Sequence record: MH791411.1
DNA length: 64,000 nt
Direction: 5' to 3' (one strand)
In this document: piece after piece, positions 12,499-62,972 of the stretch
How the letters are laid out: each line of letters begins with the position of its first letter
Numbering within the stretch: position 1 is the stretch's first letter
Translations under genes and position numbers: made by a program
The notes under the pieces: model-generated
The model's input: the letters and a program-made list of their open reading frames with translations, nothing else
Told to the model about the DNA's origin: nothing
Databases searched by the model: none

Positions 12499-14019
12499 TT
12501 ATTTCCTTTGATTTAACCATTGCTTCATTGCATTTACACGATCAGTACCAATGTGAGGCTGTTGAGGCTGGGATTCAGTTTGTGTAGAAGTGATTGGATC
12601 ACTATCTGTATTTAGTGTTACGCTTTCAACACTTGATGTAGTGCTTGGTTTAGGAGCACCAGAAAGCGTATGACGCAGTGTTTGCATTGTACTTGGTGGC
12701 ATTGCCATGTTACCACCGCCTACCTTAGAGATACCACTGTGACGGAATCCTGACCCATCAGTTTCTAGTTGTTGGATTGTTGTTGCATGGTCTAAAACAC
12801 GAAGTGAATCAATATCGTAAGACATACGCAAACGTGAACCAACTGCACTACTGTTACGTGTTTTCTGGAAGTCAAACCAAAGTTCGCCAGTTTCTTTACG
12901 TGCTTCAATGTAGATAACGTTATCCGCAGTATAGATTTTAGAAATACCACCAGCAATCTGACTTTGACTTTTCTTATCTTCATCCATACCACTACGGTTA
13001 AACTGTGACGCAGTGAATACGGTCAAATCCATTTTGGTTGCTAGTGCACGCAATTCTTCAGATACAAATTTATCTTTTGTAAATGTATTAGATTTATCAT
13101 TAGGACCAAGACGATTTGATGTTAATAGGTCAAGGTAGTCCACACAAACATAATCTAATTTGACTTCCATTTTAATTTGCAATTCACGAAGATAACTTTC
13201 AATATCATCAGTGGTTGTTACGGATTCTGGTAAACGTTTAATACGCAATATACCACTATCCTTACCTTCCATTTGAACTCGTAGACCAATCTTTTCAGCT
13301 TCGTTCTTAACGTTACTTAGCTTAGATTCAGTCATCATACCATAGATACGAACGGCTACCAACTCTTCTGCTAGTTCTAGTGAAATGTATGCACCATTCA
13401 TACCAGCCTTAGCAAAGTTAACTGCTAAGTTCTGTAGTACTACTGATTTACCACCACCAGACGCTGCTGCAAAGATTTCAAGTTCACGGCGACCAAAACC
13501 ACCGAATAGTTTATAGTCAAGGGTTTCCCATCCACTCTTGAATGAACCTTGCATAGTGCTCAATGAACGAATGGTATCTTCTGGATTTTCAAAGATATCA
13601 AGACCCAACTCATTCTGTACAGATACTAACATAGCTTCACGAATGAGTTCTTCGATGCCACCATATTTTTTCTGATGTACTAATTCCATACCTTTCTCTA
13701 CTGCTAGAGCTAGAGCTTTGTGACGGCAAAACTCACTACAGGTATCCAGTACTGCCTGTTTATGAAGTTCTTGTACTTCATACTGATCATACTGATAACC
13801 ACCTTTCACTTCGATATCTTTCAGTGTAGGGGATGAACTATATTTTGCTGCATAATCATGAACGTACTGAATACTTTCATGAAATGTTTTATCAAAATAT
13901 TCTGGCTTTAGAATATTTTTACAACGTACAAATAAATCTGGATTACTGAAAACTTGGGATAGTAAGTATTGTTGTGCATTAATCCCATACTGTTTGACGT
14001 CCACTGTGCTTTGAATCAT
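12499..14019 (-). CDS. gp41: Replicative DnaB-like helicase (T4 gp41-like)
   Basis: Walker A AASGGGKS, ISLEL, YVCVDYLDL, SEELRALA, TASQFNR, KTRNS. Confidence 0.93.
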   Translation of the reverse strand: MIQSTVDVKQYGINAQQYLLSQVFSNPDLFVRCKNILKPEYFDKTFHESIQYVHDYAAKYSSSPTLKDIEVKGGYQYDQYEVQELHKQAVLDTCSEFCRHKALALAVEKGMELVHQKKYGGIEELIREAMLVSVQNELGLDIFENPEDTIRSLSTMQGSFKSGWETLDYKLFGGFGRRELEIFAAASGGGKSVVLQNLAVNFAKAGMNGAYISLELAEELVAVRIYGMMTESKLSNVKNEAEKIGLRVQMEGKDSGILRIKRLPESVTTTDDIESYLRELQIKMEVKLDYVCVDYLDLLTSNRLGPNDKSNTFTKDKFVSEELRALATKMDLTVFTASQFNRSGMDEDKKSQSQIAGGISKIYTADNVIYIEARKETGELWFDFQKTRNSSAVGSRLRMSYDIDSLRVLDHATTIQQLETDGSGFRHSGISKVGGGNMAMPPSTMQTLRHTLSGAPKPSTTSSVESVTLNTDSDPITSTQTESQPQQPHIGTDRVNAMKQWLNQRK

Positions 14020-14045: not shown

Positions 14046-15101
14046 TTACATCCACTTATCCGTTTGTGCTTTAATATAGAAAGGCTCGTCAACTATACTA
14101 TCATGTATCAGTTGTAAACAAAATAATCTTCCAAATCTAGCACATGCTTCGTCAAAATCTTTAATGTGACGTATAGTACTTCCAACACGTACTGCCCCAA
14201 AATCTGGGAAAGAAACACTAAATCCATATTCTAGTGCTTGTTCGATTGTTTGTAATCCATCCTTATCACGGTCTGGTACGATAACAATCTTTTTACCTTT
14301 TTCTTGTGCAGCTTTAAGTACATCTATTTGTACTGCTGACAATTTAAAGTTATTTGCAGAAACACCACCCATTAGTGCTGCATCCATTGGACCTTCACAA
14401 ACTAATATAGTTTTAATTCGTTCATCTTGTAACAGATCATAATTATATAGAATATTAGTACTGACCTGATTAATAAAACGATAGGTACTTCCTGGGTCTT
14501 TAAGTTTGTGTCTAGCAGTATATCCGATAATTTTACCGTTCATAACGTATGGTATGATAAATCGGTCATACATTTTATGTTCTTTAGCTGGACTCCAATA
14601 CAATTCTAAATCTAATAGATATGGATTTCGCTCATTCACATGATTCAGAACACTAATAAATTCTTGTGGTATTTGCTCTTCTGGTAACGATGCCCATTCC
14701 CAGAATGTTTTTGAGTTCGGTGGTAATTCACGAACAGTTACACGTTGATATAGTTTAGATGCAGTAGTTTCTTGTTCTGCAAAGTCTCCACTATCAACCA
14801 TTTCTTTAATGTAAAATTTAGCTAGTTCTATTTCCTTATCCTGTGCACCAAAAGAAATGAGCAAAGACTCCATATCTTTGCTCATATATTTTCCAGGTTG
14901 CCACCCAGTTTTTAGACTACAGTTAAAACAGTTATAAGAAACAGAACCATCTGCGTTAAACATATGATTGCCGCGATTTTTAGTATCGGGGCGTGAATGA
15001 CCACGGAACACACAAGCAGGACAATTGTGATGTGTCCACATACCAATTCCTGGTACTGGGTCATTCATGATTTGTGCCATGATGTTTTGTACAGCGTTCA
15101 T
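14046..15101 (-). CDS. gp61: DNA primase (T4 gp61-like)
   Basis: N-terminal zinc-binding CPAC...CFNC; RFIIPY; TOPRIM CEGPMDA and VPDRDKDG. Confidence 0.9.
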   Translation of the reverse strand: MNAVQNIMAQIMNDPVPGIGMWTHHNCPACVFRGHSRPDTKNRGNHMFNADGSVSYNCFNCSLKTGWQPGKYMSKDMESLLISFGAQDKEIELAKFYIKEMVDSGDFAEQETTASKLYQRVTVRELPPNSKTFWEWASLPEEQIPQEFISVLNHVNERNPYLLDLELYWSPAKEHKMYDRFIIPYVMNGKIIGYTARHKLKDPGSTYRFINQVSTNILYNYDLLQDERIKTILVCEGPMDAALMGGVSANNFKLSAVQIDVLKAAQEKGKKIVIVPDRDKDGLQTIEQALEYGFSVSFPDFGAVRVGSTIRHIKDFDEACARFGRLFCLQLIHDSIVDEPFYIKAQTDKWM

Positions 15102-16191: not shown

Positions 16192-16545
16192 ATGAATCAA
16201 TATAATACTATTCCACCATTTATCACGGTAGTTCAGTGTGATGGTAAAACTTTCATTGGTATTATCAAGATAAAAAGTAAACAGTATACTACTCTTTACT
16301 GCTTTGATGATATGGATGAACCAATGCAAGATGAATTGTTGGGTATAGCACATGATTGGTGGTGGCAAAGCAACAGGTCAATTCCAGTCTGTCTATTCTT
16401 CCAAGAAGAGATGGAGAAATTTGAACCTTACACACAGAGATTCGATACCCCTGCGGTGAATTTCGTTTGTGGTCCAGTAGTTTCTTTAAGTGATTTGCCA
16501 CAAAAACGCATCAAGCGTCGTAATGTGGCTCTTAAGAAGAAGTAA
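16192..16545 (+). CDS. Hypothetical protein (WWWQSNRSIP motif, basic C-terminus)
   Basis: Clean ORF with RBS GGAA and an upstream late box. Confidence 0.75.
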   Translation: MNQYNTIPPFITVVQCDGKTFIGIIKIKSKQYTTLYCFDDMDEPMQDELLGIAHDWWWQSNRSIPVCLFFQEEMEKFEPYTQRFDTPAVNFVCGPVVSLSDLPQKRIKRRNVALKKK

Positions 16546-17170
16546 GATGTTCAACTAAAGCGTTAAGTTGAACTACAATCATTAAGCTGTATGCATAAGC
16601 ATGTGGCTTTTTGAAATATCGTAACTTATTTCCTGCTTGGTCTGTGCCAATAGTACTGTAATCCCATATAGTGGATTCAACTTCACTCCATGTATTCATA
16701 CTTTGGCACTGCCTTTTTCCAGGACGAATCATTGCAATAAACATTGCAAGTTCATCAATGGATTTAGGTTTCCACACATTTAATAATGTAACATGTTTTT
16801 TAATCTGTGAAAGATGTTCAACTATTTCTGGTTCTAACAGAAGATCCCAATTAGGTTCCTGATTCATTAGTTCTTTTAAATGTGCTCTATCACGAACATA
16901 CTGGTAAGCCGATTGTGACAGGATATCTACCTTTTGATATCCCAAGCGTTCGGCTTCTTTATATTGTATGCTGGCTAAACCAGTGATAGGGTCAATTGGT
17001 ATATTATCAAAATGAACACCACTGTTATGGGGGATTAAACCATCCTCCGTAATTTTTTCTGTACTTCGCACACAAGGAAGCTGTGCAATCACTGACTTAC
17101 TATCTTTAAAGTCAATGTCGATATCTGTTCGTGCTTTACGGTACGAATTAGAATTTGTCGAATCCTGCAT
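16532..17170 (-). CDS. Minimal DnaE (PolIII-alpha)-like protein
   Basis: TDIDIDF, HNSGV, GYQKVDIL, IAMIRPG and FKKPHAYAY correspond in order to DnaE PDIDIDF, HAAGV, KxDFLG, LxRPGP and FNKSHxxAY. Confidence 0.75.
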   Translation of the reverse strand: MQDSTNSNSYRKARTDIDIDFKDSKSVIAQLPCVRSTEKITEDGLIPHNSGVHFDNIPIDPITGLASIQYKEAERLGYQKVDILSQSAYQYVRDRAHLKELMNQEPNWDLLLEPEIVEHLSQIKKHVTLLNVWKPKSIDELAMFIAMIRPGKRQCQSMNTWSEVESTIWDYSTIGTDQAGNKLRYFKKPHAYAYSLMIVVQLNALVEHLTSS

Positions 17171-17477
17171 TTTTGATTTGCTCCTGCAATTTGTTTACAG
17201 TGTTAGATAATTTGGTTACCTGATTTTCTAACATTGTACACTTTTGTTTGGTCTTTGACAACTCTTGACTTAGACCAAAGAATCTTTCCTCATGTCTTTC
17301 AACCATACTGATAATTTTTTCTACACGAACAGGATCGTGCACCTGAAAGGTTTTACCATCAAGTGTAATTTCAGTTATAGAACCCTGTCTAAGCAATGAT
17401 AAAGATTTAGATTTATCTGCTTTAGGCACAGGTACATACCCTTCTGGTATTTTATTATATATACTTTTTCCATTCAT
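17148..17477 (-). CDS. Small coiled-coil protein
   Basis: Heptad-rich C-half. Confidence 0.7.
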   Translation of the reverse strand: MNGKSIYNKIPEGYVPVPKADKSKSLSLLRQGSITEITLDGKTFQVHDPVRVEKIISMVERHEERFFGLSQELSKTKQKCTMLENQVTKLSNTVNKLQEQIKNAGFDKF

Positions 17478-18184
17478 AATCCAGCCTCACGTAGCATACT
17501 TTTTATTTCATCACATTCCTTTTTGTACTTTATAGTTTTAACCTCAAAGTAACTAGGATCAATGTATTTAAGTATATACTCGATTTCAGAGTTAGAGAGA
17601 TTCTTGAAAAACTTATTAGTACTTTCTTTTGGTGCTAACCAGATAATCCAAGGTGAAATCTTACCACTCTCAATCCATGCAATTGCACGGGCAGAACTCA
17701 CATTGGAAAAAAACTTATTCCACTCCAAGTTCAGATTCTGACCCCATTCCACCATCGCAACAACACTACGGGAAACCGCAGCATTGGGAGATTCAGAACG
17801 AATACAATCTAATATCCATTCATCCTTTGCTTTATAAGTACTCCATTCCATAATAGGACGGTTTCTTACAATTAGACTTTTCACAAAACCATCAATATCT
17901 AAAATATCACGGTTGTTCAAATAATAAATTGCAAAATCATAAAAATCACTAAAGTACTTTGATTTTATAAAAGCCATTAATGGTTCAACTCCCTTCTTGA
18001 AAGGGAAATGGTTTAACTCCATGAATTGCATATAAATGCGAAAAGCCTCCCTCATGGGGCGGCTATCACGATCTTCGTAGCGGTCACGTTTAACACACTT
18101 ATGTGTGTTAACTGTGTCTTCGCGTTTAAATTCTTTATCACAGAACTTACATTTGTATACGGGACTACTTGATTTCTTTGCCAT
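17474..18184 (-). CDS. Hypothetical protein with N-terminal zinc finger
   Basis: YKCKFCDKEFKREDTVNTHKC. Confidence 0.7.
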   Translation of the reverse strand: MAKKSSSPVYKCKFCDKEFKREDTVNTHKCVKRDRYEDRDSRPMREAFRIYMQFMELNHFPFKKGVEPLMAFIKSKYFSDFYDFAIYYLNNRDILDIDGFVKSLIVRNRPIMEWSTYKAKDEWILDCIRSESPNAAVSRSVVAMVEWGQNLNLEWNKFFSNVSSARAIAWIESGKISPWIIWLAPKESTNKFFKNLSNSEIEYILKYIDPSYFEVKTIKYKKECDEIKSMLREAGL

Positions 18185-19010
18185 ATTTCTTACATTCTTC
18201 TTTAAATAATTTCATCATTGATTTCATTTCTTTCTCTTGCAAACCTATGTCTTCAAGGAAAGACTCGAATGTTTTTTTGTTATATTGCAACAAAACAATT
18301 TTATATTCATCTTCGTTCATTTGAGTTGCGATTGAATCTGGCTGTGTACTTTTAATGAGTTCAAATAATTCATTATTAGCACGCTTAAAACTCTTGGAAA
18401 AGTTTAACCAGTTTCGTGGCAATTCCTTACCACCCAACATATCATGAACAGAACATAGTAGTTGATATACAAGTTCAGGGTGTTCTTTCATATCCCAGAA
18501 CCCATCATTAACCATATCATTCAACATAATCAACTGATAACGTACAACGTCACTGTCAACCAATGAGATGATCTGTCCACCAGCAATACTAAATTCAGTC
18601 ATTGCTGCAATCAACTTGTTAGCATCATCATTGCTTTGTACGGCAAACTTGATACGCCAATCATAGTCACTGTGACAGTACTTAGTAACTGATGTTACAT
18701 TAACACCAGTACTATTGAGTTCTTTGACAAGTTCAGTTAGTGCTTCTTTACCACCAGCTTTCCACTTACCAAATACGTTTTCCACTTTACTACTAGGGAA
18801 AGTTACTTGAAGTGAGTCATCAAGTGAACTTACCCAACGAAGTACGGTATAAGGTGTAAATTCCTTACGCTCATCTTCGGTCATGTCATTATAGTATTTG
18901 TAATCTGCACGGTCAATATGTTTTAGAAATTCAGCAATAGAAAATGTATGCTGGGTTGGTTTATCGTTTTCGTCTACTGACTTAGCTTTAATATTACTGA
19001 AATCTAACAC
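18165..19010 (-). CDS. Probable clamp-loader small subunit (gp62-like) with an internal insertion
   Basis: EERKEFTPYTVLRWVSS-type N-terminal motif and LNDMVN..W..KEHPELVYQLL; located in the replication cluster. Confidence 0.5.
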   Translation of the reverse strand: MLDFSNIKAKSVDENDKPTQHTFSIAEFLKHIDRADYKYYNDMTEDERKEFTPYTVLRWVSSLDDSLQVTFPSSKVENVFGKWKAGGKEALTELVKELNSTGVNVTSVTKYCHSDYDWRIKFAVQSNDDANKLIAAMTEFSIAGGQIISLVDSDVVRYQLIMLNDMVNDGFWDMKEHPELVYQLLCSVHDMLGGKELPRNWLNFSKSFKRANNELFELIKSTQPDSIATQMNEDEYKIVLLQYNKKTFESFLEDIGLQEKEMKSMMKLFKEECKKYGKEIK

Positions 19011-21504: not shown

Positions 21505-22323
21505 TTAATTAGTTCGAGTATTATATTCGTACTCAAATGTATATACTAAATCTTTATCACAGTTTGGGTTACTTGCATCAAGAATATCACTGTTAGTAAT
21601 CATCCATTCAATATAGTTCAATGGAACAGTTTCCATTGGTTCGCCTTTGTGTTTACCAAATGGCATGAATTTATAACGCATTGGTGTATTACAGAATGTT
21701 ACGATTTGTTCACCAATGTCACCATTAGGGTCAATATGTCCACGTTCAATCGCAACTTCAATCAATTTGATTAGAACTTGATAACACATAAACACGTCAT
21801 CTTTTGCTGCGTGAGCATTGACTGCACGATGTACATCACGATAGCAACCAAATTTATACCACAAATAACTTAGAGTTAAGTTTTTAAATTCAGTGTCTTC
21901 TGCAAACATCTTCTTAGCTAAACGAAGGGTACAAATCCATTTATCTTCATCGAGCAAGTACTGCGAAACTGAGTTACGATATTTATATTCGTTATCTACC
22001 ATCATTCGGCGGTCAAATTGAACGTTGTGTCCAATAAAATAATTACGACACCCCATTAGTGCGTCAATGTTTTCTAAGTCATCTTTATAACCAATACAGT
22101 TTGCTACATCTTCAGTACTGATAAAATGCACAGCACTTGCTTCTGGTGGTATATCTTTTAGTGGTTTATAACGCAAAGTGTAGTTATCAATAGTATCAAT
22201 ATTCTCATGTGCATCGTGAGGATATGAAATACTAAATTCAATAATATCATCTTCACTTTCGACACCAGTTGTTTCGGTGTCTAGTACTGATACGTTTGAT
22301 AGGAACTCATCTAATTTTGTCAT
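21505..22323 (-). CDS. DEDD 3'-5' exonuclease (DnaQ/ExoX-like) with C-terminal MPFGKHKG (DUF3820-like) module
   Basis: LDTETTG, GHNVQFD, CTLRLAK, AHAAKDDV. Confidence 0.85.
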   Translation of the reverse strand: MTKLDEFLSNVSVLDTETTGVESEDDIIEFSISYPHDAHENIDTIDNYTLRYKPLKDIPPEASAVHFISTEDVANCIGYKDDLENIDALMGCRNYFIGHNVQFDRRMMVDNEYKYRNSVSQYLLDEDKWICTLRLAKKMFAEDTEFKNLTLSYLWYKFGCYRDVHRAVNAHAAKDDVFMCYQVLIKLIEVAIERGHIDPNGDIGEQIVTFCNTPMRYKFMPFGKHKGEPMETVPLNYIEWMITNSDILDASNPNCDKDLVYTFEYEYNTRTN

Positions 22324-34546: not shown

Positions 34547-37500
34547 TTACCAGGTGAAGAATCCGTTATTAACGGCTGCTGTGCTTTTCTCATGAATACC
34601 AATATCCATATCCAGAATACCAAAAATGTTTTCTAATTTTTTAGTTAGAACTATTTCTTCCATTTTCTCTGTATCAAATGGTAGTTCTAAGAACCATTCA
34701 GGTAGATATTCCACACAGTCAATTGGGTAACCTACTGCTTTGATACCCATCGGGTTATCTTTTAAGTTACATACAATTACTTTTGTACCGTCAGTTACTT
34801 CAGGTACAGTTTTGTCATCATATACTTCACGTAGACGGTTCCATTGAATACCTGCTAATACGTGACCAACTTTACATTTACCAGAAACTTCATATTCTGC
34901 TTCTAAGTTGGTATAGTTCTTAACAGTTTTCGGTGAACCCTTTTCGTGTACAGGCATGTCTTTAAATACCTCTTTAAAGTCACGTACACGCTGTTTAAGT
35001 TGAGCTTCAGACTCACCCACCAGCAATGCAATTAGAGTCTCTTCTAGGAAGTTCTGGATGTATTTTGGCGTATCTGAACGTTTAATTTCAAGACCCATCG
35101 CTTTAATTTCACCAGGCTTTCCATCAACATCTTTACGGAAACCATCTTCCCAGTACTTGAGAATTGCATAACGCTTTTTCTTCAGGAATAGACCACGGGA
35201 ACCGACCATCTCTAGGTCTGCACCAACAATCTTACCTTTCTCAATACCAGTATTGAACATTTCGTTCATGAATGAAGGGAATGATTCACCAACTTCATCA
35301 CCGATTTTGATATACATGTCAACGATTTCTTCTTTCGAAAGATTATATGGAATACCTTGTTCTTTCAGATAATGAGTTACACTGAAGTAAACAGAGTCAG
35401 TATCACCGTAAATCACAGAGCCACCTTGGTGATTATAAACGCCAGTAGTGATTTCATTGATACGGCTTGCCATATGTTTAGTCATAGAACGACCAGTTAA
35501 GGTAACGGACTGACCTAAACGTTTATCAAAGAAACGTGAACCTTTGTTCAATAGTGCACCATATAGACTGTTTAGAAGAATCTTACGAATTTGCTGGTTC
35601 TGTTTCCAGAATGCACTTTGCTGTTTGAAGTAATTCTTATCTTCCGTTGCACAGAAAATACGACCATCTTTCAGTACTAAACCATTTTCCACAATGAGTT
35701 TTGCAACTTCTTCCCATTGACCTTTACCAATAGCAATACGTAATAGATAAACAGGATCATTGTCATGTAAGTTTGTACGGAACATTGTACCACTTGTGTA
35801 GTTAGATAGCAAAGGTTCAACCTTCTCAGAACCATTGAATTCCCACCCATCACTATACATGTGTTTGTAGTCGATTACCATTTTTTGTTGTGCTTTACGC
35901 TCAGAATACCATTGAGTAAGAATATCTGGAATTACACCATACTTAGACTTATCAAAAAGTGTTCCGTTAGCACTTAGTACAATAGTACTGTCTTCAGCAA
36001 AGATAATATCATACAATTCTTTACCAGTTGCATTGAACGAACTACCATCTTCTAAATCAACAATCAAAGTTTTGTCAGATTTTTCATGAACCATTGTAAA
36101 TTCTACAGCAGCAAATAAACCATGCCATGCAGCGGTCCAATCAGGTTCAAACGCTTTAGATTTGGATTTAGCTTTTTGCTCTTGTACTTTAGCAGCAAGA
36201 TATGCATCAGTGTAGTCTTGACGAAGTTGTCCAAGAATACATTCAGTACTCATGCCAAGTGTACGTAGTACAGTTGGATACAATGAGTTAAAGTCTGTAC
36301 ATCCCAAATCGCTAACAAGGCCAAGAACTGGATCTTGAACCCATGCACCAGCAGCTTTTGCACTGATTTTCTCATCTTCTTCATCACCTTCTTCACCATA
36401 GTACTCCATCTCTGGATCTAACTCAATATCATCTTTCGGTGCTTTGTTAAAAACAACTTCACCGCGACTGTGAGCAAGGTTGATGATAGCAGTGTCGATT
36501 AGTGCAACCGAACCCATTGTAGTACTAATTAGTACACATTCTTTATGAGCAAGACGGTTGTGCAGGTTGATAAAGTCACATTTAGCATCAATTTTCTTTA
36601 GAAGAATACTATCCTGCTTAGAATAACGCAAGAATGTAATGTAATCTTCACGGTATAGTTTATCCAATGAACCTTCATAGGATACTTTGTTTTCTTTAGT
36701 TACCTTTTCAGCAATATAATCTAGTTTGTACGACTGTTCAACTTGACCAGCATGTTTCTTATAAAGAGCAAGATAGTCTAAGTGTACGCGTCCAATAAGA
36801 TCATATGTTACTACAGTTTTACCAAAGTTATCAGCTTCACGAGCATTTGGTTTTTTATTCCACAAGCACCAACGAGCAGTAGTTGCTTCGTTGAAGATTT
36901 TCTTGGTACGGTTTACCATATATGGAATATCAAAGAATTCACTGTTCCAACCTGAAATTACATCAGAGTCATCGATTAGACTAAAGAACTCCATAAACAT
37001 TTCTTTCTCATCCGTATAAAGGATGACAGTACTGTTAGGGTCGTTAGTTTCTTCGTTTAACTGACGAACAATATCTTGTGCTTCGTACATTTCCATATCA
37101 GTTGGTGGCAAAGTCAGTACATAATCCTTACCAGTCCATGATTGATATAGAGAAATTGCAGTTACGCGGTTGAATGGATCTGATGGTGGAGCATAACCAA
37201 ACTTCTTATGGAAGTCGGTTTCGATATCGAAAAATGCTACGTTCAAATCCGGCGAACCTTTACCCATGTATTCTCTAGCCAACGTTTTGAAGGTAATGTT
37301 GCAATCACTTTCAAAAATACGTAGACCTTCATTTTTATGTTGCTCAACGCTTTTATTCATCTGTGATTGAGTTTCAAACTCCAAATGCTTTGCGTTGGTT
37401 CCATAAATTGTTTTGTGTTCACCAGTAGGAGATTCAACATAATATTCATATACTGGGTCCAACTGACGTAGAATACGTTTACCGTTTTTACGTTCTGCTA

Positions 37501-37552
37501 CGTGCAAAATATCACCAGTACGTTTACGTTCCATATAAGCATCGATATACAT
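34547..37552 (-). CDS. gp43: Family B DNA polymerase (gp43-like)
   Basis: Exo FDIET, GWNSEFFD, Y..QD; pol DFNSLYP, KILLNSLYG, YGDTDS, KKRY. Confidence 0.98.
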   Translation of the reverse strand: MYIDAYMERKRTGDILHVAERKNGKRILRQLDPVYEYYVESPTGEHKTIYGTNAKHLEFETQSQMNKSVEQHKNEGLRIFESDCNITFKTLAREYMGKGSPDLNVAFFDIETDFHKKFGYAPPSDPFNRVTAISLYQSWTGKDYVLTLPPTDMEMYEAQDIVRQLNEETNDPNSTVILYTDEKEMFMEFFSLIDDSDVISGWNSEFFDIPYMVNRTKKIFNEATTARWCLWNKKPNAREADNFGKTVVTYDLIGRVHLDYLALYKKHAGQVEQSYKLDYIAEKVTKENKVSYEGSLDKLYREDYITFLRYSKQDSILLKKIDAKCDFINLHNRLAHKECVLISTTMGSVALIDTAIINLAHSRGEVVFNKAPKDDIELDPEMEYYGEEGDEEDEKISAKAAGAWVQDPVLGLVSDLGCTDFNSLYPTVLRTLGMSTECILGQLRQDYTDAYLAAKVQEQKAKSKSKAFEPDWTAAWHGLFAAVEFTMVHEKSDKTLIVDLEDGSSFNATGKELYDIIFAEDSTIVLSANGTLFDKSKYGVIPDILTQWYSERKAQQKMVIDYKHMYSDGWEFNGSEKVEPLLSNYTSGTMFRTNLHDNDPVYLLRIAIGKGQWEEVAKLIVENGLVLKDGRIFCATEDKNYFKQQSAFWKQNQQIRKILLNSLYGALLNKGSRFFDKRLGQSVTLTGRSMTKHMASRINEITTGVYNHQGGSVIYGDTDSVYFSVTHYLKEQGIPYNLSKEEIVDMYIKIGDEVGESFPSFMNEMFNTGIEKGKIVGADLEMVGSRGLFLKKKRYAILKYWEDGFRKDVDGKPGEIKAMGLEIKRSDTPKYIQNFLEETLIALLVGESEAQLKQRVRDFKEVFKDMPVHEKGSPKTVKNYTNLEAEYEVSGKCKVGHVLAGIQWNRLREVYDDKTVPEVTDGTKVIVCNLKDNPMGIKAVGYPIDCVEYLPEWFLELPFDTEKMEEIVLTKKLENIFGILDMDIGIHEKSTAAVNNGFFTW

Positions 37553-46344: not shown

Positions 46345-48081
46345 TTAAAAAGAATCGCCTAAATTATTCGGGTTAAAACCTGCACTTCCTTGTTGTTCTT
46401 GGTATTCAGCATCGGCACTTTCTAAGTTACCGTCACCATCAATACCCAAATCCATACCAGGATCGTTAGGAGCATCTATACCAACAGATTGCAACCCAGC
46501 AGCATCTTCTTCACCACTTGACGGAGCGGAACCATCTTGTGGATTTTCTTGGAGCCACATTTGCTCATTCTTAACAATATCAGCTTTAGAGAAGCCCATT
46601 TTTTCAAGAATAGTTTGTTTTGCCATATATGGCAGATCGTTAAGTGGGAGATAGGTGTTAATTAGTTTAGCATCTAGTTCCGCTTTACGATAAGAAGCCA
46701 AGTTAATAGGTGGATTCATAATTACTTCAAAAGATGAAGTACTAATGTTATATCCATTTTTAACCATAAAACGTTTAAATTCTGCATCAAATAGTTTTGC
46801 AACTAAACGTTGATAACGCATACATTGGTTATTAAAACGTAATTCACTTGCCATTGCTTGTGTTGCACCATCACCGAATAGTGATACACCACCATCATCT
46901 GGACCTTGCGGTAGATATGAAGCTGGAATTTGCAATCCACGAATCAATTTATTGTTGAAGTAACGCAAGTCATCAATCTGACCTAAGTTATCACCACCTG
47001 GAAGTGTTTGTACATCTGAACCACGACCTTCAGAAGTTTGTGGGAAGAAGTAATCTTCTAGAATACTTAATGGATTATATGCTGCATCCATTAGAGAAGT
47101 ACTGCCACCTTTATTTGAAGGAATACGTCTTTGGTGAATTTCATTTTTGAATCGTTCTACGTATGCCATTGCTTGGTGAGTTTGCATATCACCAACGTCG
47201 ATTTTAAATACACGACGCTCTGGAGCACGTTGAACACGATAGATAATAATACTATCTTCAAGTAATTCTTTTTGTTTATAGACTTTGAAAACATCTTCAA
47301 GTATACTAGTACCAAAAGGCCAAACTCCATCTTGTCCTGTATTTAGGGTTAGATGAATTACGTGTTCTGCACCAACTGGAATAACATCAAGACGACCGTT
47401 AGTACTGAATGGGTCAGCAGAGTTTCCTTGGTTAGTAAAGCCAGATGCACCACCTGCTGCTACTGAACCACCGCCACCTAATGTGGTAGGGATTGCACCA
47501 GGATATGCAGTTTTGTCAAAACCAACTTGTAAGTTACTAAACACTTTATCTTTAAGATTCAAAGATACGTCACGGATATAATAAATTACAGGGGTTTTTC
47601 CGGTTGCTTCGTTAACGAATACTTGTTCAACGTTTTTTGGGCTTACCCAGTACCAGTCAAATGTTTCTGGGTCACGAATGAAGAATTGGTCACCGTATTT
47701 TAATAGGCCACGTACAATTTCATACATTCTGGTTTTAAAATCATTTTGTTCAGTCCATGCATCCAAACGGTCTTCAATAGTAGTTACTTCTGTATCACCA
47801 ATATCATCTTTATATTTGATTTTATATGGAAGACCAAAATCTTCAGTACTTTGTGTACAGAAGTCAGCAATGATATTAAGTGCTGTTCTAATTTCAGGAT
47901 CTTGGTCCATCTGTTCATACTGACTATAACGTTCAGTACGGTTAGCTAAACCATTGTATACTACTGGAAGATAGGAAGCGAAATTGGTTTTCGTTCCTGT
48001 TGATTTGTTGCTATTACTGGACTGATTAGGGACGACCGATAACTTCGATCTCCCCATTGTCATATGTCGTTTCCAACTCAT
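46345..48081 (-). CDS. gp20: Portal protein (gp20-like)
   Basis: LLEDSIIIYRVQRAPERRVFKIDVG, EDYFFP, TLPGGDNLGQIDDLRYF, IPASYL. Confidence 0.96.
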   Translation of the reverse strand: MSWKRHMTMGRSKLSVVPNQSSNSNKSTGTKTNFASYLPVVYNGLANRTERYSQYEQMDQDPEIRTALNIIADFCTQSTEDFGLPYKIKYKDDIGDTEVTTIEDRLDAWTEQNDFKTRMYEIVRGLLKYGDQFFIRDPETFDWYWVSPKNVEQVFVNEATGKTPVIYYIRDVSLNLKDKVFSNLQVGFDKTAYPGAIPTTLGGGGSVAAGGASGFTNQGNSADPFSTNGRLDVIPVGAEHVIHLTLNTGQDGVWPFGTSILEDVFKVYKQKELLEDSIIIYRVQRAPERRVFKIDVGDMQTHQAMAYVERFKNEIHQRRIPSNKGGSTSLMDAAYNPLSILEDYFFPQTSEGRGSDVQTLPGGDNLGQIDDLRYFNNKLIRGLQIPASYLPQGPDDGGVSLFGDGATQAMASELRFNNQCMRYQRLVAKLFDAEFKRFMVKNGYNISTSSFEVIMNPPINLASYRKAELDAKLINTYLPLNDLPYMAKQTILEKMGFSKADIVKNEQMWLQENPQDGSAPSSGEEDAAGLQSVGIDAPNDPGMDLGIDGDGNLESADAEYQEQQGSAGFNPNNLGDSF

Positions 48082-60308: not shown

Positions 60309-62972
60309 ATGGCAGATACAAGTAAGAAATATGCCCAACAACAGTTGGGTCGTTTTGACCCTTCGTATCCACAACTAGCAACCGTGATGGATAACCGTGA
60401 CCCAACTAAATCCGGTAAGCTAAAAGTGTGGATTCAAGGTTCACAAAGTGATAAAAATTCAAAAGAGTCATGGATTGAAGCATCATACATGTCTCCATTC
60501 GCTGGTAAAACTCCAGGGATACCAAGTGCTGATGCTTATGGTCAATATCCAAAGGGATATGGTTTTTGGGCGGTTCCACCTGATGTCGGATGTACTGTTG
60601 TTGTTATATTTGCACAAGCAAGAACATTCCAAGCGTATTGGATTGGTTGTGTTTATGACCAACGTATGAATACGATGGTTCCTGGGATGGCTACTGAAAT
60701 AAGCAACTATGCTGGTACTGATATGCCATTACCCGTAACTGATTATGACCGTAATACAATTTCTACCAGTACTCAAGACAAATATGCAAACGTTCCAATT
60801 ATTGCAGGTCTGAAAAAACAAAACTTACTTTATGATGAGGAAGCGGGTGTTGCTAACCGTAGCAGTACTCGCCAGACCACCAGTACTGTTTATGGTCTTT
60901 CCTCACCTCGTGGTAACAGTTTTATTATTGATGATGGTTACACAGAAGAAGAATTAACAGCACCTACATGGGATCAAGATCCAGATGGTTATCAGGATAC
61001 CCAATTCAATAACCCAGTGAACGATACTCGTGTTGGTTCTCGTAAAAATGAAGGCGTTGTAATTAAAACACGTAGTGGTGCACAGTTGTTGTTATCTGAA
61101 GCCTCTGGTGATGTTCTTTTAATTAACCGTGATGGTACTGCACGTATTAAATTCACTGGTGAAGGTGATATTGAAATGCACTGTGATAAGAATATTAACA
61201 TTCGTGCAGGTCAAGATATTAACATGGTTGCTGGACGCTCATATAATATTGAAAGTGGAGCAGACTTCAATGCTCGTGTTGGTGCAAACACTAAACTAGA
61301 TTTGGTTGGTGCATTGGATGCTAAAGTTGGTGGTCAGGTTGTTATTAACGCTGGAGCAGATTTACGTTTAGTAACAGCAGCTTCATTACGTATGCAAAGT
61401 GGTAGCAGTACTGATATAACTGCTGGTTCTAATGCGTCAATCTCTGCTGCTACCAGTGCTAATCTTATTGGTTCTTCATCAGCTATTATTAGTGGTGGTG
61501 GTCAAACTCTTACTGTTAACAGTGGTGGTAATAGTGGTACTGCTGAATTTAATGCACCAAACTTCCGCACCCCATCTGCTGGCTTGAATGATCATATACA
61601 TGATATATCGGCTTGGGTTGATGCTGAGAATCACGGCAGTACTGTTGAACCTCCACGTCAAGGTGGTGGTAGTGGGAATAGTGAATCCCCAGTTCAACCT
61701 GAACCTGCTAATGATGTAGCTCCAACTTTAGCTCCAGTACAGGACACTGAAGCAATTCAATATGTAAATTATACAACAGAAACAGAACAAGTTCAAACAC
61801 AAGATTTAATGACTTCTGATCCTGGTATGACTGGTTATAGCATTACGTATGAAGGTCTTCATATGTTCATGCCGTGTAGTGGAACCATTCGCCAATACGG
61901 TTATTGGGGGAAAGGTGTCCCGACTAGTGGTGGTGGTAAAGCTGATAGAAGTGGCTGGGAAATACAGTGCAAGGGTGATGTTGTAGCTCCAGATGGCGGT
62001 GTAGTTGTTATCACTAATGGTGCTTTATTGGTTCAACATAAGTCTGGATATAAATCTGTATTTTATAATATTCAATCAGATTTGCTCAATAAAGACGTTG
62101 TTCAAAAAGGTCAAGTTATCGGTAAAGCTAATGGTGTTATTCAATTTGAAATAAGAGTTACCTCTGCCAACGTACTAGGATTTAGTGGTTCAGTTGACCC
62201 TGGATTATTCTATGCATCCCAGACTGGTACAGGTTCTGAAGCGGGAAATAAAACATTAATTGCAGGACAAGCAACGAACCAAGCAGCACCGAAAGCTGTT
62301 GTTCAACCTTCTGTTGATAGTGATGAATTAGTTGTAACAACTAAAATTAAAACTATCGGTACTGGGTATTCTCAACGTGGTTCTCGTCATGTCCCTCGTC
62401 GTAGAAGAACACAACGTTCAGGTGGTACTCCAGCACCCACTGCACAAGAATCATACAATGTGGGTAATGTTGATAAGACTGCAATTGATTGGAAAGTTGT
62501 TCCAGGTGATTCACAATTTATTTCTGAATTGAAAGAATATGAAGGAACAATGGCGTATCAACAAGCTAAAGGATATTACCGCAATGGTAAATTCTGGAGA
62601 TATTTGGACAGTCGTGGGTTCCCAACCATCGGCTACGGACACTTGATCGTTGGTGGTGAAAACTTCTCTGGTGGGATTACCGAACAGGAAGCCAATGATA
62701 TGTTGGTGCGTGATAGTAGTAAGGCTATATATGACGCAAAATCCATTTACGCTTCTTATAAGATGAAAACACCTTACATGGCACAACAAGTTCTATGTCA
62801 AATGGTATTCCAGATGGGTAAAGGTGGTGTAATGAAATTTAAGTCAATGCTATCTGAAATGGCTAAAGGTAACTACAAGCAAGCTGCTGCTCAAATTCGA
62901 AATTCAGCTTGGTATCGTCAAACTACACGCCGTGCTGAATTAATGGCACGTAGATTAGAGGCATGTCAATAA
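60309..62972 (+). CDS. gp5: Central spike (gp5-like): OB fold, beta-helix, HxH apex, degenerate M23-like domain, C-terminal lysozyme
   Basis: DPTKSGKLKVWI, VPPDVG, TRSGAQ, beta-helix repeats, DHIHD, E..D..GFPTIGYGHL, FQMGKGGVMKF. Confidence 0.85.
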   Translation: MADTSKKYAQQQLGRFDPSYPQLATVMDNRDPTKSGKLKVWIQGSQSDKNSKESWIEASYMSPFAGKTPGIPSADAYGQYPKGYGFWAVPPDVGCTVVVIFAQARTFQAYWIGCVYDQRMNTMVPGMATEISNYAGTDMPLPVTDYDRNTISTSTQDKYANVPIIAGLKKQNLLYDEEAGVANRSSTRQTTSTVYGLSSPRGNSFIIDDGYTEEELTAPTWDQDPDGYQDTQFNNPVNDTRVGSRKNEGVVIKTRSGAQLLLSEASGDVLLINRDGTARIKFTGEGDIEMHCDKNINIRAGQDINMVAGRSYNIESGADFNARVGANTKLDLVGALDAKVGGQVVINAGADLRLVTAASLRMQSGSSTDITAGSNASISAATSANLIGSSSAIISGGGQTLTVNSGGNSGTAEFNAPNFRTPSAGLNDHIHDISAWVDAENHGSTVEPPRQGGGSGNSESPVQPEPANDVAPTLAPVQDTEAIQYVNYTTETEQVQTQDLMTSDPGMTGYSITYEGLHMFMPCSGTIRQYGYWGKGVPTSGGGKADRSGWEIQCKGDVVAPDGGVVVITNGALLVQHKSGYKSVFYNIQSDLLNKDVVQKGQVIGKANGVIQFEIRVTSANVLGFSGSVDPGLFYASQTGTGSEAGNKTLIAGQATNQAAPKAVVQPSVDSDELVVTTKIKTIGTGYSQRGSRHVPRRRRTQRSGGTPAPTAQESYNVGNVDKTAIDWKVVPGDSQFISELKEYEGTMAYQQAKGYYRNGKFWRYLDSRGFPTIGYGHLIVGGENFSGGITEQEANDMLVRDSSKAIYDAKSIYASYKMKTPYMAQQVLCQMVFQMGKGGVMKFKSMLSEMAKGNYKQAAAQIRNSAWYRQTTRRAELMARRLEACQ

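Follow-up and report, generated by a model that had tools for sequence, protein, structure and literature searches.

The window analysed here is a 64,000-nucleotide stretch of sequence record MH791411.1, from Escherichia phage Ecwhy_1, a jumbo phage of the genus Asteriusvirus with a genome of 354.5 kb, comparable to 121Q and RaK2. Position 1 of the window is position 62001 of the record, and coordinates are those of the window unless the record is named. At 16532-17170 on the minus strand, a gene encodes a 212-residue protein, termed here the C piece, which consists of the second half of a Pol-beta-like palm and reduced fingers. The gene is embedded in a replication block that is kept across divergent contigs, as seen in 80 divergent viral loci (37-83% identity to the C piece, with flanks of up to 10 kb). 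The genes considered are listed below, with the number of these loci in which a neighbour was found.

12499-14019, minus strand: DnaB-like replicative helicase, downstream of the C piece (52/80 loci)
14046-15101, minus strand: primase according to the annotation of relatives, downstream of the C piece (62/80 loci)
16192-16545, plus strand: 117-aa gene (phrog_11637), convergent with and directly downstream of the C piece (79/80 loci)
16532-17170 (record 78532-79170), minus strand: C piece, 212 aa, assigned as the C-terminal half of a split minimal DNA polymerase III alpha subunit
17148-17477, minus strand: 109-aa coiled-coil protein (phrog_14909), annotated as a virion structural protein
17474-18184, minus strand: 236-aa protein (phrog_11058) bearing a C2H2-like zinc-finger motif at its N-terminus, upstream of the C piece (73/80 loci)
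Upstream of the C piece: 165-aa ORF (54/80 loci)
18165-19010, minus strand: 281-aa ORF, upstream of the C piece (43/80 loci)
21505-22323, minus strand: DnaQ/RNase T-type 3'-5' exonuclease (RNase_T, E 1e-14), about 4.3 kb upstream of the C piece
34547-37552, minus strand: PolB, 1001 aa, the presumed main replicase

The initial annotation, made from the sequence alone, described the C piece as a minimal DnaE encoded alongside a complete family B polymerase and a primase. PolB is indeed complete, with exonuclease and polymerase domains in its 1001 residues. The primase is recognisable from its naming in relatives and from visible Toprim-like motifs but gave no significant Pfam match. The 117-aa gene overlaps the 3' end of the C-piece gene by 14 nt. 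Residues W56, W57, N61, R62, G94 and P95 are invariant in its family (W58 and S60 nearly so), as are K105, R106, K108 and R109 of a basic C-terminal tail, so that the core reads WW-x(3)-NR and the tail KR-x-KR throughout; no match to the protein was found in Pfam, NCBIfam, the PDB (profile search) or the ESM Atlas. The zinc-finger motif of the 236-aa protein is seen as weak Pfam matches. The C-piece gene starts before the 109-aa gene has ended, with 23 nt shared between them. The 109-aa gene, detected in no more than two of the 80 loci (the two nearest ones), has the appearance of a lineage-specific insertion in the replication block. The 281-aa ORF is intact in the window but is entered in the Ecwhy_1 record as a misc_feature ('similar to hypothetical protein'); it has no Pfam match and is a sliding-clamp-loader small subunit according to the annotation of Turkey3. 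The DnaQ-type exonuclease is called 'Pol III epsilon' in relatives and has a short QSregVF_b match at residues 219-242.

The five motifs on which the comparison with DnaE had been based are all present in the C piece and in DnaE order, beginning at residues 16, 48, 80, 145 and 186:

17108-17125, minus strand: DIDIDF, residues 16-21, equivalent to E. coli DFDVDF (401); metal-binding Asp pair D16/D18, and D20
17015-17029, minus strand: HNSGV, residues 48-52, equivalent to E. coli HAGGV 511-515
16919-16933, minus strand: KVDIL, residues 80-84, equivalent to E. coli KFDFLG (553)
16718-16738, minus strand: IAMIRPG finger motif, residues 145-151, equivalent to E. coli RPGP (639)
16589-16615, minus strand: FKKPHAYAY finger helix, residues 186-194, equivalent to E. 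coli FNKSHSAAY (756)

Residues D16, D18 and D20 correspond to E. coli D401, D403 and D405, and K80 and the third catalytic aspartate, D82, to K553 and D555. The palm picks up again, after the thumb deletion, at HNSGV, where H48 corresponds to H511. In the fingers, R149 and P150 are equivalent to R639 and P640, and K188, H190 and Y194 to K758, H760 and Y764; the run from K187 to H190 aligns with E. coli 757-760. In the E. coli alpha subunit D401, D403 and D555 are catalytic and H760, the counterpart of H190, presumably acts as a steric gate that keeps ribonucleotides out (PMC8485763). Among 35 homologues of the C piece, down to 40% identity, no substitution is seen at D16, D18, D20, H48, G51, K80, D82, R149, P150, K187, H190 or Y194, and K188 is almost always kept.

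By sequence methods alone the relationship of the C piece to DnaE appears marginal and lies below curated thresholds. The Pfam model for the fingers, DNA_pol3_finger (PF17657), matches at E 0.04 with 13.7 bits (cut-off 22), and a phmmer search with the C piece against the PDB gave no match. A profile of the C-piece family retrieved only Mycobacterium tuberculosis DnaE1 from the PDB, at E 1.5, in four collinear stretches that fall on the DIDID, RPG and FNKSH motifs. Alignment to E. coli DnaE with hhalign (E 0.03) placed K80/D82 on K553/D555 and the RPG motif on 639-640. The homology to the palm and fingers core of DnaE is settled by the predicted structure. An AlphaFold2 model of the C piece, from an alignment of 35 sequences, has a mean pLDDT of 91.8, and the top 15 Foldseek matches to it are all Pol III alpha structures. 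Superposition with VIA-align gave the following:

Taq alpha ternary complex (3e0d): Z 9.6, 199 of 212 residues, chain residues 456-841
M. tuberculosis DnaE1 (5lew): Z 9.4, 199 residues, chain residues 414-811
E. coli alpha (2hnh): Z 8.4, 182 residues, chain residues 399-784
PolC (9qrn): Z 7.0, 193 residues, chain residues 970-1299
Best unrelated chain: Z 3.9, 80 residues aligned

The model thus fits C-family polymerases only; structure prediction and superposition on DnaE had been proposed in the initial annotation. Identity between the C piece and the bacterial alpha subunits is 14-19% in the structural alignment, so the C piece is not a recent capture from a host.

The C piece is equivalent to residues 394/399-784 of E. 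coli alpha minus the thumb and about 80-100 residues of the fingers. The thumb (approximately 433-510 in E. coli) is absent: 27 residues separate DIDIDF from HNSGV compared with 106 in E. coli, and the model has only a beta-hairpin at this position. The stretch from RPG to FNKSH is likewise reduced to 36 residues from 116. Arginines of the DnaE fingers contact the triphosphate, and no counterparts of these were identified in the C piece within the shortened stretch (E. coli 640-756). The structural alignment stops at E. coli residue 784, such that the tau-binding C-terminus and everything beyond this point are missing; the OB fold would therefore also be absent, as judged only from where this alignment ends. 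A search of the whole 354.5-kb genome gave no match to the PHP domain (PF02811) at E<=10, while the control search with this model found matches in 14/14 genomes. Nor did this whole genome yield a match to the beta-binding region, HHH_6 (PF14579), and for the fingers it gave a match to the C piece alone. The loss of the PHP and OB domains and of most of the thumb and fingers, noted originally, is borne out by the genome search for PHP and HHH_6 and by the extent of the alignment for the thumb and C-terminus.

The C piece begins 15 residues before DIDIDF, and the GS-motif helix is not in the same polypeptide; starting so close to the DxD strand, the protein is without the first half of the palm, including this helix, which holds the triphosphate. 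Since the NTP-binding half of the palm is missing, the C piece is not a self-sufficient minimal DnaE. The missing half is encoded elsewhere in the phage genome, beyond the window:

Record 46838-47356, minus strand: Ecwhy1_103, the N piece, 172 aa, 31 kb from the C piece

Ecwhy1_103 is annotated as 'DNA polymerase III alpha subunit' in record MH791411.1 itself. Over the whole phage record the DNA_pol3_alpha model (PF07733) has exactly one match, at record 46844-47083 on the minus strand (35.7 bits), and the score of the N piece, 35.7-36.4 bits, is above the Pfam cut-off of 23.9. With hhalign, residues 98-172 of the N piece align to E. coli alpha 320-396 (E 8e-6). The N-piece model was built from the database protein P0121, which shares 98% identity with Ecwhy1_103, and has a pLDDT of 85. 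Residues 67-172 of the model superpose on E. coli 273-394 with a Z of 10.0 and an rmsd of 2.7 Å, and the model superposes on M. tuberculosis DnaE1 303-414 with a Z of 12.2 and an rmsd of 2.3 Å; all 14 of the 14 listed chains with Z >=2 are C-family polymerases. The GRGS at residue 139 is equivalent to E. coli GRGS 361-364. Among 37 homologues of the N piece, G-x-GRGSSV-SY is invariant and EFLK forms the end of every one. The gene adjoins those for a clamp-loader subunit, a GroES-like protein and topoisomerase II. Residues 1-66 of the N piece (record 47159-47356) form a small beta-beta-alpha-alpha unit in the model (pLDDT 65-91); this unit, at the position of the DnaE PHP domain, is covered by no structural match.

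The two halves are complementary. In E. coli numbering the N piece runs to approximately residue 394-396 and the C piece takes over at approximately 394-399, forming a contiguous core with no gap; together they correspond to DnaE residues ~273-784 minus the thumb, in 384 residues and two chains. The search for a separately encoded remainder of DnaE, also suggested at the outset, has thus yielded the other half of the palm (Ecwhy1_103) but neither PHP nor HHH_6. Of the description 'minimal DnaE', the palm and fingers core with its Asp triad stands, while the stand-alone status is refuted by a split partner that carries the missing half of the palm, a finding which the initial annotation had itself named as one that would refute it.

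Intein-split DnaE exists in cyanobacteria, and the phage halves could in principle be joined covalently in the same manner, by split-intein trans-splicing, or by recoding. The N-terminal and C-terminal parts of a split intein (IntN and IntC) are about 100 and 35 residues long, respectively. In the phage proteins, on the other hand, nothing follows EFLK(W) in the N piece and some homologues of the C piece start M-DIDIDF with no leader, which leaves no room for intein halves at the junction. Neither an IntN on the C-terminus of the N piece nor an IntC on the N-terminus of the C piece is present, and there is no extra sequence at these ends among the homologues. As the genes are moreover 31 kb apart, the probability of covalent joining is close to nil.

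Phage records with the C piece number 96 and those with the N piece 93, and the host genera are the same. In every case listed, the two are separate genes 14-116 kb apart, exemplified by PA5oct (43 kb), Xoo-sp13 (14 kb) and SCTP-2 (116 kb). At least 585 contigs in IMG/VR encode the C piece. In the 80 divergent viral loci its ORF is 189-246 aa long from stop to stop, and neither a fusion nor a match to the N-piece profile in the flanks was found. Between the C piece and its orthologue in 121Q, dS is 0.77 and dN is 0.033 (dN/dS 0.043). A gene in pieces that has lost most of its domains might be viewed as the functionless, decaying remains of an ancestral full-length phage DnaE. The low dN/dS and the stable split and sizes exclude decay as well as recent fragmentation: the break point and sizes do not differ across the viral contigs, at least 585 in number, and 96 phage genomes, and active-site residues are invariant in both halves. 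Decay is hardly credible in view of these conservation data, which effectively refute it.

A homologue of the C piece (34.6% identity) is present in Alishewanella phage vB_AspM_Slickus01 (OQ508957.1, 68370-68840), whose genome of 141.6 kb is well under jumbo size.

Conservation of the catalytic Asp triad in a small protein that lacks the thumb and clamp-binding part is what might be expected if the 212-residue protein acted alone as a repurposed nucleotidyltransferase, in priming, end-tailing or nucleotide signalling, as first suggested. In all Pol-beta-fold nucleotidyltransferases, the GS-motif helix binds the triphosphate. Here this helix is instead on a co-occurring protein that abuts the C piece on the DnaE structure, and the invariant finger motifs and steric-gate His point to templated use of dNTPs and not to signalling. 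Signalling by the C piece is disfavoured in particular, because the counterpart of H760 is invariant and the finger motifs are kept. A nucleotidyltransferase made up of this protein alone is very unlikely.

The initial annotation had also raised the idea of a mimic of host DnaE, which would be a decoy that hijacks or poisons the host replisome. The protein is DnaE-derived and the phage has its own replicase in PolB, both of which would suit such a role. Pol III alpha binds epsilon via its PHP domain, beta via an internal clamp motif and tau via its C-terminus. Every one of these known surfaces of alpha is missing in the phage protein, which makes mimicry unlikely, and strict conservation of the catalytic residues would be unexpected for a decoy. 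This proposal is, in our judgement, highly improbable.

There is little doubt that the 212-residue protein is the C half of a known split enzyme, described below. With high probability the C piece is one of two separately encoded subunits, the C-terminal one, of a minimal C-family (Pol III alpha-type) polymerase that assembles without covalent linkage and is typical of the RaK2/121Q/PA5oct-like (group 2.2) jumbo phages. The basis for this assignment is observed: homology, complementary halves, co-occurrence, catalytic-residue conservation and purifying selection. In the proposed mechanism, the N and C halves would associate non-covalently, with the GRGS helix of the N piece positioning the triphosphate of the dNTP while D16, D18 and D82 of the C piece bind two metals. 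The finger helix of the C piece (K188, H190 and Y194) together with the RPG motif would hold the nascent base pair and reject ribonucleotides. We predict, with somewhat better than even confidence, that the two proteins together work as a template-directed DNA polymerase. Such a complex would be a dNTP-using, template-dependent second polymerase beside PolB. Having neither a thumb nor a clamp-binding motif, it would be distributive unless other proteins help, and processive synthesis is doubtful. It may act in repair or in the extension of primers or gaps, near the primase and helicase genes, but the assignment of either of these roles, or of any other in particular, is tentative and on present grounds doubtful.

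The neighbouring genes might supply accessory subunits of the split enzyme, which is speculation. The 117-aa protein may be an accessory factor, and the DnaQ-type exonuclease could be a candidate proofreader for a polymerase that has no exonuclease of its own. A more elaborate scheme, which we consider unlikely, would place the two halves at the centre of a second polymerase of several subunits, specific to phages, in which the 117-aa and 236-aa proteins replace the thumb and clamp contacts. With the primase and DnaB, it would act as a Pol-alpha-like primer extender handing over to PolB. If true, this would represent a T4-type replisome with a two-polymerase division of labour.

A split minimal Pol III alpha has been described in the group 2.2 jumbo phages by Iyer, Anantharaman, Krishnan, Burroughs & Aravind (Iyer et al. 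2021, Viruses 13:63, PMC7824862). In that study the phage-specific enzyme consists of an N-terminal NTP-binding protein and a C-terminal Mg2+- and template-binding protein encoded by distant genes, in T4-like jumbo phages that also have a family B polymerase and no further Pol III domains. The authors suggested that it might work with PolB in the synthesis of one strand or in repair, and put it forward as a model of the ancestral enzyme (PMC7824862). The Ecwhy_1 pair is the same system, with two distant genes, beside PolB, and no other Pol III alpha domains. Both halves are already named in several GenBank records (Turkey3, fEgEco12, PAC2 and the 121Q RefSeq), and in PHROGs the C piece matches phrog_11778 (E 2e-106) and the N piece is phrog_11127, each of which is called 'DNA polymerase'. 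The split mini-DnaE is therefore already known from Iyer et al. 2021 and from the GenBank and PHROGs names. What the present analysis adds to that description is the location of the junction at E. coli 394/399, the Z-scores, the invariant residues and dN/dS, the finding that the halves are not adjacent in any of 80 divergent contigs, and the conservation of the 117-aa neighbour. The PA5oct omics paper makes no mention of either half, and no later biochemical study of the split mini-DnaE was found in the literature, where reports of 'split DnaE' concern cyanobacterial inteins. Strong selection maintains the enzyme in environmental jumbo-phage contigs that number in the hundreds, and the value now lies in biochemistry, for which residue targets and candidate partners are given here.

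Cyanobacterial split DnaE resembles the phage system in having two DnaE genes that are far apart. The cyanobacterial halves, by contrast, are full-size and are joined by an intein at another site, whereas the phage split has no intein and divides the palm itself, separating the GS helix from the DxD strand. In Bacillus subtilis, a full-length, clamp-binding DnaE extends primers and then hands over to PolC. For this enzyme and for eukaryotic Pol alpha, the likeness would be a possible functional analogy only, that of a second polymerase by a primase and a helicase. With bacterial DnaE and PolC (2hnh, 3e0d, 5lew and 3f2b) the phage enzyme shares the Pol-beta-like palm, the DxD motif and third Asp, and the K of KxD, and the C piece also has the RPG and FNKSH finger motifs and the steric-gate His. 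Unlike bacterial DnaE, the phage pair is without the PHP domain, thumb, beta-binding/HhH and tau-binding parts, and the OB fold is outside the aligned range. Bacterial DnaE has 1160 residues in one chain and the phage enzyme 384 in two; if active, this thumb-less and clamp-less pair would be smaller than any other known relative of the bacterial replicase.
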